Sequence record: OQ828465.1 | DNA: 64,000 nt | Direction: 5' to 3' (one strand) | Shown: positions 5,658-59,608 of the stretch, one piece after another | Numbering within the stretch: the stretch's first letter is position 1 | Layout: every line of letters starts with the position of its first letter | Program-made: the position numbers and the translations under genes | The notes under the pieces: generated by a model | The model's database searches: none | Seen by the model: only the letters and a program-made list of their open reading frames with translations | Told to the model about the DNA's origin: nothing

Positions 5658-5715
5658 GCCCTCCCTTCGGGGAGGGCTATTGCACTAAATTTTATTTGAG
5701 ATCTACATTATAGAT
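5658..5715 (+). repeat. terminator + early promoter cassette (copy of 20779..20835)
   Basis: 45 bp gccctcccttcggggagggctattgcactaaattttatttgagat identical at 5658 and 20779. Confidence 0.85.
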
Positions 5716-17133: not shown

Positions 17134-17153
17134 ATGCCTCCCTTTGGGGAGGC
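17134..17153 (+). terminator. intrinsic terminator
   Basis: gcctccc-tttg-gggaggc-tttattt. Confidence 0.8.
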
Positions 17154-20778: not shown

Positions 20779-20835
20779 GCCCTCCCTTCGGGGAGGGCTA
20801 TTGCACTAAATTTTATTTGAGATATATATTACATG
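20779..20835 (+). repeat. terminator + early promoter cassette (copy of 5658..5715)
   Basis: 45 bp identity with 5658; TATATTAC 20825-20832. Confidence 0.85.
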
Positions 20836-23839: not shown

Positions 23840-23915
23840 ACCCTCCCTTCGGGGAGGGTTTTATTTATCTTTTTTTGTATTTAAACTATTTAAAAAGCTA
23901 TATTACAAATATGAA
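23840..23915 (+). promoter_or_regulatory. terminator + early promoter cassette
   Basis: accctcccttcggggagggt, T-run, TATATTAC 23899-23906. Confidence 0.8.
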
Positions 23916-47449: not shown

Positions 47450-47570
47450 GTAAAGAATACCCAAATCGGGATCTCCCGGACTATCTCCCTTCAGCGTTCC
47501 CGTCCGCAAATGAAGGTGCCGCCGAGATCCCACCTATTGATAATGCCCTCCCTTCGGGGAGGGCTTTATT
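47450..47570 (+). ncRNA. candidate structured GC-rich ncRNA
   Basis: TAC-N14-TATGTA promoter as for tRNAs, nested stems 47468-47531, UUCG terminator 47545-47564. Confidence 0.6.
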
Positions 47571-49028: not shown

Positions 49029-49709
49029 ATGGCAGAAAAGCTCAGTTTTGCTGATATATTTAAGATGGCTAAAGAGGAAAATGTTAAGCTTGAATTGCAT
49101 TGTCTAATTGGTACTCGACCAGTTAGGGGTCTTATTAAAAGTTTAAACTTTAATTCAATCAGACCTGATATATGTGAATCTGTTAATTTATATGTAAATG
49201 TATTTTCTAAAGTAGTAGAGGCTAGAGTAGATCTATCAAGTACTACTGCTGATTATGGTTGCTGGAGAATGACGCCAGAAACTAAGAATTATGTAGATAG
49301 TAAATATAACTTACCAGAAAAAATTGATATCACTAATCCAGATATCGTTAGGAGTAATATTAATTATTACCTCAGTTTACCTACTAAGGAACGCACTGAG
49401 TTATTTAATAAAATAAATAATCCTAATGTCATTGAGGCAATAAACAAAGAATGGTCTAAAATGGTTGTAGAGTATTATCAATTTGAGATCGATTCGTTTA
49501 TTGGATTAATTGATTTCGATCATGTCCTTATCAGTAAGTTCATGGTATTTAACTGGATGGATGATCTGTTTGAATATGCTTTAAATATCCCATTAAAACA
49601 AACCAATACAGTAAATGAAGGCACCTGTTGCTTACTGGTTCACAAAGATAAAAAGGCAACATATACCCATTTTACTGATATTAAAAATCTTATCAAAGTA
49701 AGTGTATAA
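49029..49709 (+). CDS. hypothetical protein
   Basis: 226 aa ORF. Confidence 0.85.
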   Translation: MAEKLSFADIFKMAKEENVKLELHCLIGTRPVRGLIKSLNFNSIRPDICESVNLYVNVFSKVVEARVDLSSTTADYGCWRMTPETKNYVDSKYNLPEKIDITNPDIVRSNINYYLSLPTKERTELFNKINNPNVIEAINKEWSKMVVEYYQFEIDSFIGLIDFDHVLISKFMVFNWMDDLFEYALNIPLKQTNTVNEGTCCLLVHKDKKATYTHFTDIKNLIKVSV

Positions 49710-49718
49710 TTACGGCAT

Positions 49719-49760
49719 AAACCCCTCTCCATACGGAGAGGGGATATGTCTTTATTTTTT
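49719..49760. terminator. terminator at the convergent strand switch
   Basis: cccctctcc-atac-ggagagggg between converging genes. Confidence 0.75.
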
Positions 49761-49769
49761 TATTTAAAC

Positions 49770-50159
49770 TCACTTAGAAAAATCTTCTACTGGAATATCA
49801 TCCAGCCAATCATTAAGTAGTTTAAATTGATGAGGGTGTTGCATCTTAGTAACTTTACCATACTTAACACTAACTGCTTTACCAGTAGACACGGCAAGAT
49901 CAACTAGTTTCTTTTCATATGCATTAAACTCATCATACCACCGAGTATGAATAAGTTTTGCTAGGCGATCGTAAGCCGTCTTTCGATAATGATCTTCTTG
50001 TTCGCGACGCTGTTCGTCAAGTAGTTCTTTTTGACGTTGTTCTTGCTGACGCTTTTCTTCTTCCTTTTTCTCTTTCTCTAGTCGTTTCTTCTCAGCAAAA
50101 TATGATAGAACCGGTAGTTTGAAAAGTAGGCTTAGAAGTAGTTGAAAGAATTGTTTCAT
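49770..50159 (-). CDS. charged coiled-coil protein with amphipathic N-terminus
   Basis: ATG 50159 after GAGGA; own TAC-N14-TATGTA promoter (+1 about 50217). Confidence 0.8.
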   Translation of the reverse strand: MKQFFQLLLSLLFKLPVLSYFAEKKRLEKEKKEEEKRQQEQRQKELLDEQRREQEDHYRKTAYDRLAKLIHTRWYDEFNAYEKKLVDLAVSTGKAVSVKYGKVTKMQHPHQFKLLNDWLDDIPVEDFSK

Positions 50160-53118: not shown

Positions 53119-53194
<76 letters not shown>

Positions 53195-53868: not shown

Positions 53869-54100
53869 AATAGACTCCTTTATTACAATGTAGCATAGAT
53901 TCAGTTTTTTAACTGGAATTAAATGCCGATTTTGAAAAGGTGATAAAACCTTTTCTCATCTATAAATGAATTTATAATAGTAACAATGAATATAACCAGG
54001 GGTGGCAAACCCCTGGCATTTAGACACACTCTATAATAAGTTCTACCACCGAGTGTGTTTAGTGGATAGATTTAAGAATACTTTATTATAGTACTCTTAC
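53869..54100 (-). ncRNA. structured 230 nt leader or ncRNA
   Basis: TAC-N14-TATGTA promoter (+1 54100) and at least five hairpins. Confidence 0.45.
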
Positions 54101-54152
54101 ATAATATCATCGTGCCAGTATAATTATCTAAATAGTTATAAATATTATTATT

Positions 54153-55244: not shown

Positions 55245-55320
<76 letters not shown>

Positions 55321-57001: not shown

Positions 57002-57454
57002 TCAACGTGGCCATTGTAAAGAAGTTATCTTATTACCATTAATGTAGACATCGGTCACTTCGCACCAATCATTAATTCTGTGTTCAATAATTGGAACATC
57101 ATTTCGGCCAGCCACTCCAATCATATTCCATTTAACATAAATATTCATTAGATCAATTGTTAATTTCTCTTTTATGAGTTTAGGAGAAATTAATTTAATA
57201 TTATTAATGTTAAAGAAGTAATTATTAACTTCTTCTAAATATTCATTAGTATTAGTAGTACTAACTTTGCCTTCATGTTCAAGTGAGGATGGTTTATTCT
57301 GATTTACAATATTGCTCACTAGACTTCTTAAAACGGCACTTGCCCTACCAGCTTCGCGTCTTTTATACTTATCATAGTCTTTTACATTAGCTGCAATTTT
57401 ATCAAATTCTTTTTGGGCATAGATTAGCCCTGGTAAAAGTTCATTTTTGATCAT
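57002..57454 (-). CDS. hypothetical protein
   Basis: 150 aa ORF. Confidence 0.8.
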   Translation of the reverse strand: MIKNELLPGLIYAQKEFDKIAANVKDYDKYKRREAGRASAVLRSLVSNIVNQNKPSSLEHEGKVSTTNTNEYLEEVNNYFFNINNIKLISPKLIKEKLTIDLMNIYVKWNMIGVAGRNDVPIIEHRINDWCEVTDVYINGNKITSLQWPR

Positions 57455-57509
57455 TTTATAATTACTCTATGTTGTTTATACATATTTTAATATACATACG
57501 TAAAAACAA

Positions 57510-57652
57510 AATATAAAGCCTCCCCGAAGGGAGGCGATATATCGTCATTAATGCCCAGCAAAGAGTTTTACTCTCTGGGAGCCAGTTGGAAGGGGGACTG
57601 GCTCCGATCTATTATGACTAATGTAGAAACAAGGGGGAGGGATTATTTCTAC
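57510..57652 (-). ncRNA. candidate late sRNA with C-rich hairpin loops
   Basis: TATGTAG start, three hairpins, UUCG terminator 57518-57535 with U-tract on the - strand. Confidence 0.55.
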
Positions 57653-57667
57653 ATAATATTAGATACA

Positions 57668-59608
57668 TTACTGGTAGTTTTCATTACCCATTGCTAACCT
57701 ACCTTTTATAGACCGATCTACCCATTTTGCGGCGGCCTCCATGATATCAATGAATGAGTGGTATTGCCGCATTTTATTAACTTCCATCACATCATCATCA
57801 ATCCCAGGGCCAAAGCATGCGAATAACAAATCATTCCAATCATAGTAATCGATACCAGCTATTGGACTAGGGTTATCCAACATATCGTAGATTAGTCCTT
57901 CCAGTGGATCTGGTAAATCAGGGAACTTGAAGCTAAGAGTTATCTGACGTTCCAATGCCGATATAATTAAGTTCATGGCCTTAGCTGCTTCTTCTTCAGT
58001 AAGAGCTTTGAGTTTACTATCAGTAGATGGATATTTCGCGACCACGGTGCGAGGTGAATTATAGGTACCCTTACCTGTAATAGTACCGGCAGGCCATTTA
58101 ACACTAGTCTTGAATCCAGCACGTGCCTTGTCTACGATAGCCTTTGCTTCTTTGTATACGTTAGCGTCTAGGTTATGTGCATTCTTAATGAGTAGATCCA
58201 ATGCAGGTTTAGTCTTCTGCCTGTAAGACTCCATTTCGCGATTAGACTTTTCTTCGAGTTTGAAGAATGGTTCTACTGCACGAATGGCATCCTCGATACT
58301 GACTTTACCATTAATACTCAGTACGTTAGCTATACCATTACTATTGATATCGCCAGTAACGAATACCTGCTTATTAAGCCATTGTGGATTGCCAAATGTA
58401 GATTCTAGTTGTTCCAGAAATCCTCTTGCACTGGACGATGAACGCCAGATACGTTTCTGATCACCTCGATTAGAAATGCCAAGAACTTTTTTGATTGAAT
58501 CGATAAGACCTTCATTTGAGACTTGTATAAAACCGGGAGTATTAATGATGGACTTCTCTACATACCCGCCACGAATAACCCGATTTATAAAACCATTAAG
58601 ACCACTACCAGTTTCGGCCATATCTTTCATGATTTCTATATTCGTTTCACCGGCACTTTGGGCATTGTATAAATAATAAGAACCATCTTTGAATTTCAGT
58701 ATAATCCAGTCATCCCCAGTTAGATATGAATCAATATTACTATCATTCATACTTTGATATTTAATGAATTCTGGATTAGTACTTAATACTTCTTCAATGA
58801 ATTCTTCTAATGCCGCAGAATTATTAATAGCATCAACCGGTAGAATTTCACCATCAATGGGTTCAGTAGTTGGACCAGTAACAATGGCAGGTAACGGATC
58901 CTCCTCTACAATAACAGTTTCTTCCACTGGTAGAGCACCGCAAGATAAATCAATTAGTTTATTAAAACTACTAATGATCTCACCAAGTGCTACAAGAACT
59001 GCTGGCTGTTCAACTTGTTCAACTTTAGCAATACCAGTTTCTGTAAATTCTTCAGTAATTCGGTTATAGACTTCCACTAATTGATTAGTAAGCTCTGCTA
59101 CTTTTGGCAGAGTCTGCTTAGACAGAGGTTCAACTACAGTTGTATCTGCTTCAACAAAAATAGAGTCATCTTCTTCTAAACGGCTAGTATTAGCTGAGCC
59201 AGCTGTGAAGTTATAAGGCATATCTTGAATTACTTCATTAATTTCAGATGCCTCCATATCTTCATTTAGACGACCACTATAAGTACGCATCATACCTTCT
59301 GCTTCTTTAATAGTGGAATGCGCTAAGCGTCCCCAATCACCACGCATAATACCGCGCTCGGTAAGACCGCGTGCAGCTGAACCAAGATCAATAGGTTCTT
59401 CAATAAATGATTGTTCTTCAACCCACTCCTCATTACTGTAACATTCTTTTAGAATGGTTTTAAATTTAGTACTAAAGGGTTGTAGAATCTTTTTATCTAC
59501 TTGTTCAACATTTGTTTTAAAGTGTTCTAGACTTGGTGTAGCTTTTGAAGATACTTTTTCAGTACCGCTATATAGCGTACGGTTTAGGAAGTTTAGCATT
59601 TTATTCAT
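57668..59608 (-). CDS. internal head protein (phiKZ gp303-like) with KTSC-like module
   Basis: 646 aa; S/A/G-x-E processing-like motifs (ASE, SNEGLIDSIKK, GNE); position next to nrdB. Confidence 0.7.
   Translation of the reverse strand: MNKMLNFLNRTLYSGTEKVSSKATPSLEHFKTNVEQVDKKILQPFSTKFKTILKECYSNEEWVEEQSFIEEPIDLGSAARGLTERGIMRGDWGRLAHSTIKEAEGMMRTYSGRLNEDMEASEINEVIQDMPYNFTAGSANTSRLEEDDSIFVEADTTVVEPLSKQTLPKVAELTNQLVEVYNRITEEFTETGIAKVEQVEQPAVLVALGEIISSFNKLIDLSCGALPVEETVIVEEDPLPAIVTGPTTEPIDGEILPVDAINNSAALEEFIEEVLSTNPEFIKYQSMNDSNIDSYLTGDDWIILKFKDGSYYLYNAQSAGETNIEIMKDMAETGSGLNGFINRVIRGGYVEKSIINTPGFIQVSNEGLIDSIKKVLGISNRGDQKRIWRSSSSARGFLEQLESTFGNPQWLNKQVFVTGDINSNGIANVLSINGKVSIEDAIRAVEPFFKLEEKSNREMESYRQKTKPALDLLIKNAHNLDANVYKEAKAIVDKARAGFKTSVKWPAGTITGKGTYNSPRTVVAKYPSTDSKLKALTEEEAAKAMNLIISALERQITLSFKFPDLPDPLEGLIYDMLDNPSPIAGIDYYDWNDLLFACFGPGIDDDVMEVNKMRQYHSFIDIMEAAAKWVDRSIKGRLAMGNENYQ

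Follow-up and report, generated by a model that had tools for sequence, protein, structure and literature searches.

A published 141-nt phiKZ transcript with two predicted C-rich hairpin loops as a candidate late small RNA

Does the 213-nt gap between the genes PHIKZ303 and PHIKZ302 of phiKZ-type jumbo phages encode an RNA of its own, and what could such an RNA do? The DNA analyzed here (the window, 64,000 nt) is the terminal stretch of Pseudomonas phage PA_ZH1 (OQ828465.1), a phiKZ-type jumbo phage, which it matches base for base. In megablast searches, the 2.5 kb surrounding the gap are 99.8-100% identical to phiKZ-type jumbo phages of Pseudomonas aeruginosa. The candidate RNA lies within the gap on the minus strand, downstream of PHIKZ303 (57668..59608, minus strand), annotated as the structural head protein gp303, and upstream of PHIKZ302 (57002..57454, minus strand), annotated as the function-unassigned protein gp302. 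Past PHIKZ302, a tRNA cluster continues on the same strand with tRNA-Leu(UAA), tRNA-Pro(UGG), PHIKZ301, and tRNA-Met. The minus-strand block as a whole carries seven tRNA genes (Thr, Asn, Asn, Asp, Met, Pro, Leu) with small ORFs interleaved, tRNA-Asn(GUU) being present in two copies (53119-53194 and 55245-55320, minus strand). Further away, at about 49700-50000, the gene strand changes from plus to minus, and the sign of the GC skew flips at the same place.

The first part of the question can be answered from published work. The primary transcripts of phiKZ have been mapped by ONT-cappable-seq (Putzeys 2024, microLife, PMC10914365), and one of them, TU237, is a 141-nt intergenic transcript upstream of PHIKZ302 with its own start site and a cap-enriched 5' end, ending at the terminator T131. 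A northern blot bore out its abundance and length and also showed a longer read-through form, and T131 was reported to be leaky, with read-through into PHIKZ302 (PMC10914365). TU237 was read as a 5'-UTR RNA arising from premature termination and listed as the 5'UTR PHIKZ302 ncRNA candidate (PMC10914365). The RNA in our window comes from the same phage species and shares the intergenic position, strand, 141-nt length, TATG start, and terminator of TU237; no structural difference separates the two, and the text of Putzeys 2024 does not discuss C-rich loops or targets. On the agreement of position, strand, length, and terminator, we confidently equate the RNA with TU237, an already published phiKZ RNA whose existence is hence not new. 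Our literature search found no paper assigning a function to this 141-nt RNA, and the small RNAs of phiKZ are called candidates there.

The boundaries of the RNA can be read from the DNA. Late promoters of phiKZ, used by its non-virion RNA polymerase (nvRNAP), follow the consensus 5'-TATG-3', in which the last G is the start site (Yakunina 2015, PMC4666361). A core of this late type is found at 57652..57655 (minus strand), 16 nt downstream of the gp303 stop, and would place +1 at G57652. On the other side, the terminator T131 (57502..57535, minus strand) consists of the stem-loop GCCUCCC-UUCG-GGGAGGC at 57535-57518 followed by the interrupted U tract UUUAUAUUUUGUUUUU; with its 7-bp GC stem, UUCG loop, and U-rich UUUAUAUUUUGUUUUU, it qualifies as an intrinsic terminator. 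The TATG +1 at G57652 and position 57512, about 6 nt beyond the stem of the terminator, delimit 141 nt, so that the small RNA would span 57512..57652 on the minus strand, corresponding to about phiKZ 274149-274009. The resulting 3' tail, UUUAUA, would be a poor site for the proximal face of Hfq. In the folding ensemble, the terminator is fully paired, and no competing anti-terminator fold is found. The preliminary description of this locus had proposed a late small RNA, and a discrete late-promoter-type RNA of ~140 nt is indeed present, rather than merely the tail of the upstream mRNA, as both the published 141-nt transcript and the distance from TATG to terminator indicate. We are highly confident of the existence, boundaries, promoter type, and terminator of the 141-nt RNA.

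Our calling of promoters could be checked on a second phiKZ ncRNA, 3'UTR_PHIKZ298 / 5'UTR_PHIKZ297 (phiKZ 270595-270485; Gerovac 2021, PMC8545117; Putzeys 2024, PMC10914365), which corresponds to 53990-54103 (minus strand) in the window and ends at a CCAGGGG..CCCCUGG terminator. Its published start falls within 1-2 nt of a TATG in a ATATTATGTA context. Both RNAs thus start in the ATATTATGTA late-promoter context and end at a terminator, and they lie 3.5 kb apart in the same tRNA-rich minus-strand block; the second RNA, however, lacks C-rich loops and shows no sequence similarity to the 141-nt RNA.

The position of the RNA between its neighbors bears on how independent it is. From the gp303 stop (57668) onward, T131 is the first terminator, so the small RNA sequence must also form the 3' UTR of the gp303 mRNA. 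A stabilizing 3' UTR, one of the roles raised earlier for this locus, could accordingly still apply, because the gp303 mRNA must run through the RNA sequence to the same terminator. Toward PHIKZ302, two TATG motifs lie between the terminator and the gene (57481-57498, minus strand), of which only that at 57484-57481 is conserved in all relatives. This second TATG (57481..57484, minus strand) precedes the PHIKZ302 AUG by 27 nt, is kept in nine of nine aligned relatives, and by its motif is probably a late promoter for gp302, which would then have a 5' UTR of 27 nt. With gp302 having its own promoter, the small RNA would resemble an independent unit between two genes more than a mere 5' leader.

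The RNA is predicted to be highly structured. The 213-nt gap folds with -66.8 kcal/mol (z = -6.8; none of 200 shuffles as good) and the 141-nt RNA with -51.6 kcal/mol (z = -5.6; none of 200 shuffles as stable), compared with a z-score of only -2.7 for the complementary strand. At the very 5' end, hairpin H1 (57623..57652, minus strand) has a 10-bp stem, GUAGAAAUAA/UUGUUUCUAC, capped by the loop UCCCUCCCCC at 57633-57642, so that the RNA 5' end is buried in a stem. Hairpin H2 (57578..57605, minus strand) has a 9-bp stem, GGAGCCAGU/ACUGGCUCC, and exposes the loop CCCCCUUCCA at 57587-57596. It is followed by hairpin H3 (57559..57577, minus strand), which in both the minimum free energy (MFE) and centroid folds has an 8-bp stem, CAGAGAGU/ACUCUUUG, and an AAA loop; a 5-bp closing stem (57614-57618 with 57544-57548) encloses H2 and H3. 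H1, H2, their loops, and the UUCG terminator with its U-rich tract are all where the preliminary description had placed them. A third hairpin is likewise present, but not as the bulged CCCAG..CUGGG stem then described, since the MFE and centroid folds prefer CAGAGAGU/ACUCUUUG; CCCAG/CUGGG pairing would take two C's from H2, and the register of H3 is ambiguous.

Both 10-nt C-rich loops have an unpaired probability of 1.00 in the ensemble. For genome-wide scans, we used the complete 278-kb genome of a near-identical phage, PaZh_1. In this genome, C-rich pyrimidine tracts are nearly all 5' arms of terminator hairpins, and C-rich apical loops of stable hairpins occur in this RNA only. More generally, almost all C-rich and G-rich runs across this AT-rich phage genome are arms of such terminator hairpins, many of which are bidirectionally usable.

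Conservation of the locus is confined to one genus. The 213-nt gap is found in Phikzvirus genomes only, where 47 records show 88-100% identity over at least 80% of its length; in other jumbo phages, only the terminator part of the gap is matched. Across nine Phikzvirus representatives, which amount to only five distinct sequences, all at least 93% identical, the 141-nt RNA is 93-100% identical. The flanking genes are more variable. For the 3' end of the gp303 gene, no nucleotide match was found in the seven relatives compared; in most other members, tblastn matches gp303 residues 1-506 at 75-77% identity and leaves the last ~140 aa unmatched. Likewise, gp302 has 68% amino acid identity in the T2P group, in which the RNA is 99.3% identical. 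The divergent C-terminal ~140 aa of gp303 (57668-58090, minus strand) end at the small RNA promoter, which suggests a recombination boundary there.

Within the RNA, five of seven stem substitutions keep pairing, one compensatory pair among them. This pair is in H1 (A-U to G-C at pair 9:22); H2 has two one-sided changes that keep pairing (G-U and U-G), H2 and H3 together have three, and H3 loses one terminal pair in one phage. The loops carry two substitutions in all, both C to U, with which pairing to G is still possible: loop 1 is invariant save for one C to U in the phiKZ reference, and loop 2 has one C to U at its first position in phage PA7 (MZ444140). The loops are thus kept across the genus, as the preliminary description would have expected of a functional RNA, in what is a shallow test. 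Neither covariation nor conservation reached significance in shuffle controls, because only five distinct sequences exist.

Further afield, the RNA was not recovered. A pattern scan of IMG/VR with both loops gave 60 matches, of which only phage PA7 is real and the others are chance C-rich tracts, and a pattern of loop 2 plus terminator gave two chance matches only in metagenomes. The gp302 protein matched PA7 only in IMG/VR, a gp302 alignment had no match in the JGI metagenomes, and no gp302 homologue was found outside Phikzvirus. In phage 201phi2-1, the syntenic site follows gp455, the homologue of gp303, and shows neither C-rich loops nor sequence similarity to the RNA. This site carries a TATG and, ~70 nt later, a AACCCACAGC..GUUGUGGGUU terminator, and an analogous short transcript could be made at this syntenic position.

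The presence of two exposed C-rich loops raises the question of what they could pair with, and both loops had been described earlier as matching Shine-Dalgarno (SD) sequences. The SDs of this phage are short, mostly AGG, AGGA, or GAGG, and GGAGG occurs in only 2 of the 123 annotated start regions in the window. Across these 123 regions, loop 1 pairs with a mean energy of -5.6 kcal/mol, against -4.4 kcal/mol for random coding windows, and the 16S anti-SD tail gives the same shift. The match to SDs hence appears to be generic, with loop 1 and the 16S anti-SD tail performing about equally on start regions. No specific strong loop target was found among the 123 start regions and no phage gene stands out, the top match being a G-rich tract at -30 to -20, far upstream of the start codon. 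In an accessibility-corrected scan of the whole PaZh_1 genome, the top matches are the RNA's own antisense; the best non-self site (net -14.8 kcal/mol) is interrupted by an internal loop and is 164 nt away from the nearest ORF start, and no accessible phage-encoded loop target was found genome-wide. A role as a translational repressor, also proposed earlier for this locus, would still be plausible.

Our favored reading is that of an independent late small RNA that would act as a base-pairing regulator through its C-rich loops. We are highly confident of the first steps of this reading: the phage nvRNAP starts the RNA at the late-type TATG with +1 at G57652, and transcription ends at the leaky UUCG-tetraloop intrinsic terminator, which must also serve the gp303 mRNA, with some read-through reaching PHIKZ302 and the tRNA cluster; the folded RNA has a hairpin at its 5' end, then a domain of two hairpins, and finally the terminator, and the two 10-nt C-rich loops UCCCUCCCCC and CCCCCUUCCA are fully exposed at the hairpin tips. 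From there, the loops would seed in trans on G-rich, SD-like sequences, as in the UCCC RNAs of S. aureus and the cuckoo RNAs. That the published 141-nt RNA has a base-pairing function is our best overall explanation, one that we hold tentatively and put at somewhat below an even chance. The narrower proposal, of a trans-acting riboregulator that is probably Hfq independent and has host rather than phage targets, is slightly more tentative again; Hfq would probably be dispensable given the short and interrupted run of U in the 3' tail, and host RNAs would be likelier targets than those of the phage, in which no accessible complement was found. In favor of action in trans, the RNA is conserved while the neighboring gp303 3' end and gp302 diverge. 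Against it, transcription of the RNA takes place within the phage nucleus, which the RNA would need to leave before it could reach ribosome-bound mRNAs, loop pairing to phage starts is no stronger than that of a generic anti-SD sequence, the best accessible non-self site in the phage genome is weak and away from start codons, and the discoverers of the RNA call it a 5'-UTR product of premature termination (PMC10914365).

This last description leads to the strongest alternative, that the RNA is a by-product of regulation in cis. A strong late promoter and a leaky terminator would together set the level of transcription into PHIKZ302 and the tRNAs, leaving the 141-nt species as the terminated leftover; the hairpins would protect the 3' end of the gp303 mRNA and the 5' end of the read-through mRNA, and the loops would have no function in trans. 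Putzeys 2024 describes the RNA in this way, as a 5' UTR ended by premature termination, with the read-through form on the same northern blot (PMC10914365), and several features of the locus fit as well: the lack of a terminator between the gp303 stop and T131, the burial of the RNA 5' end in a stem, and the failure to find a phage target. Moreover, 201phi2-1 has a TATG and a terminator without C-rich loops downstream of its gp303 homologue, and thus the feature shared with that phage is the arrangement, not the loops. However, the conserved TATG 27 nt before the gp302 AUG suggests that gp302 does not depend on read-through, and nothing about the terminator looks conditional, as it is fully paired and has no anti-terminator fold. 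Loops and stems are also conserved amid mosaic flanks, and no other RNA of the genome exposes C-rich loops. We consider an origin as a cis by-product possible but on the unlikely side.

Two further explanations start from the resemblance of the loops to the anti-SD sequence, and both appear improbable. The pyrimidine-rich 3' tail of 16S rRNA contains the anti-SD core CCUCC, and long G-rich ribosome-binding sites are typical of the GC-rich host. If the loops were an anti-SD mimic, then they could bind such long host sites, spare the phage SDs of 3-4 nt (AGG/GAGG), and bias translation toward phage late proteins; we give this only a small chance. Slightly less likely still, the RNA could be a decoy whose loops mimic the 16S tail (AUCCCUCC.. 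versus AUCACCUCC) and thereby, instead of pairing with mRNAs, tie up a factor from host or phage with affinity for C-rich single strands. The CCUCC core with similar flanks in loop 1, the abundance of the RNA (PMC10914365), and the lack of a convincing RNA target in the phage would agree with a decoy. Against it, no candidate binding protein has been identified, and the resemblance is short enough to have arisen by chance.

Loop 1 is also the exact complement of GGGGAGGG, the 3' arm of the commonest terminator of the window, from which competition with terminator folding had been suggested. The complementarity is real: the window contains 7 copies of GGGGAGGG where 0.38 would be expected, and the terminator CCCTCCC-TTCG-GGGAGGG is found at 5659, 20780, 23841, and 47546, close to where it had been reported. 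Its uniform family, (C/G)CCUCCC-UUCG-GGGAGG(G/C), occupies 5659-5676, 20780-20797, 23841-23858, and 47546-47563, with further members at 17137, 20337, and 33797, all on the plus strand. The terminator core CCTCCCTTCGGGGAGG has 7 exact copies in the window, the RNA's own terminator included, and the family to which this terminator belongs has 7 members in the window and 12 in the genome. As a competitor in trans, the RNA would pair through its loops with the GGGGAGGG arms of these common terminators and alter termination or 3'-end stability, and the strong over-representation of GGGGAGGG and its location would suit such a role, since 13 of the 15 genomic copies in PaZh_1 are terminator arms. 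These 13 arms are, however, already paired within CCCUCCC/GGGAGGG hairpins, each with the adjacent CCCUCCC across a loop of 4-6 nt, most commonly UUCG; the remaining two copies are the RNA's own antisense and an unhairpinned site on a gene-free strand. Opening the target arms would cost a computed 8-15 kcal/mol, so that net energies would be weak even without the topological constraint that a 10-nt loop imposes, and during transcription the cis arm is made before the target arm emerges. Pre-paired arms and opening cost make such competition thermodynamically and kinetically implausible, and the complementarity itself is trivial because loop 1 shares the sequence of the terminators' own 5' arm. 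The suggestion is thus disfavored, and we consider it very improbable.

Least likely of all, to the point of being negligible, is that the conserved feature is a protein gene on the opposite strand (57551-57697, plus strand, 48 aa): the frame is open (40-48 aa) in all relatives checked and is annotated as a hypothetical protein in several GenBank records of phiKZ-like phages, but its ATG lacks an SD and it has 4 synonymous versus 4 non-synonymous substitutions, for which we judge it spurious and probably an annotation artifact, the more so as the neighboring genes and the mapped abundant transcript are all on the other strand, its C terminus varies with the gp303 mosaic, and the plus strand folds much less well.

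Nucleus-forming jumbo phages have their model in phiKZ, which is also a candidate for phage therapy, and the RNA is abundant, conserved across the genus, and confirmed by northern blot. What our analysis adds to the published transcript is the derivation of its promoter and ends from sequence alone, the finding that, genome-wide, only this RNA exposes C-rich loops, and the negative results for phage targets and terminator competition. The two exposed loops offer a concrete, testable handle, and the analysis directs the search for targets to the host transcriptome. If they act on SD-like sequences, then the RNA would represent translation control at the RNA level by a jumbo phage; should the anti-SD mimic prove true, it would be a convergent, phage-borne analogue of the cuckoo RNAs and RsaE, and the first functional trans-acting small RNA of a nucleus-forming jumbo phage. 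If the loops are inactive, the RNA would be a cheap by-product of the promoter-terminator architecture, a caution that would extend to the other 16 "5'-UTR ncRNA candidates" of phiKZ.

How does the RNA compare with known systems? At gathering thresholds, Rfam recognizes only tRNAs in the window. A permissive Rfam scan of the locus gave only sub-threshold matches, the best meaningful one being the cuckoo RNA ar14 (RF02344; 57574-57660, minus strand), with 19.7 bits against a gathering threshold of 58.8 and E = 0.1. A T-box leader was also considered and rejected: the T-box model gives no match up to E = 10, the terminator has no competing fold, and the downstream tRNA-Leu(UAA) mismatches the CUN triplets in the loops. 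Nothing in the RNA points to a riboswitch-like or T-box-like switch.

In its genomic arrangement, the RNA is reminiscent of 3'-UTR-embedded small RNAs with their own promoter, such as DapZ and MicL, which share the terminator of the mRNA (reviewed in PMC9438474). As in these cases, the terminator is common to the RNA and the upstream mRNA, the promoter region reaches into the 3' end of the upstream ORF (here gp303), and one sequence forms a 3' UTR as well as a free small RNA. DapZ and MicL, for their part, are Hfq dependent and have single-stranded seeds and long 3' U tails. The 141-nt RNA, unlike them, is made by a phage RNA polymerase and reads through into the downstream operon.

The closest models for its function are two groups of small RNAs whose hairpin loops present C-rich anti-SD motifs. 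One comprises the UCCC-motif small RNAs of S. aureus (RsaE/RoxS, RsaA/C/G/H, and hairpins of RNAIII), in which C-rich loops seed pairing with SDs independently of Hfq (PMC9266662). These RNAs and the 141-nt RNA share an unpaired UCCC motif in their loops, here within UCCCU and UCCCCC (P = 1.00). There is no sequence or Rfam relation between them, since even with E-values of up to 10 allowed the RNA strand matched no S. aureus-type family in Rfam, and the present loops are predicted ones in the RNA of a phage of a Gram-negative host.

The other group is that of the cuckoo RNAs (ar14, CcsR, NfeR1), which consist of 2-4 adjacent hairpins whose loops each carry CCUCCUCCC, joined by linkers of at most 10 nt and without a multiloop (PMC4615179, PMC10746234). 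They resemble the 141-nt RNA in their modular, adjacent hairpins with loops exposing C-rich, anti-SD-like motifs, in the variation of stems around conserved loops, and in their proposed action, occlusion of the ribosome-binding site. At best, however, CCUCCUCCC agrees with each of the loops UCCCUCCCCC and CCCCCUUCCA at only 7 of 9 positions, the C-rich hairpins of the 141-nt RNA are 17 nt apart with H2 inside a multiloop, and the RNA comes from a gammaproteobacterial phage whereas cuckoo RNAs are confined to alphaproteobacteria. Bit score, loop mismatch, hairpin spacing, multiloop, and taxon together rule out membership in the cuckoo/ar14 family. Common descent with the cuckoo RNAs is unsupported, and the phage RNA, while not one of them, may by analogy work in the way that cuckoo and UCCC small RNAs do.
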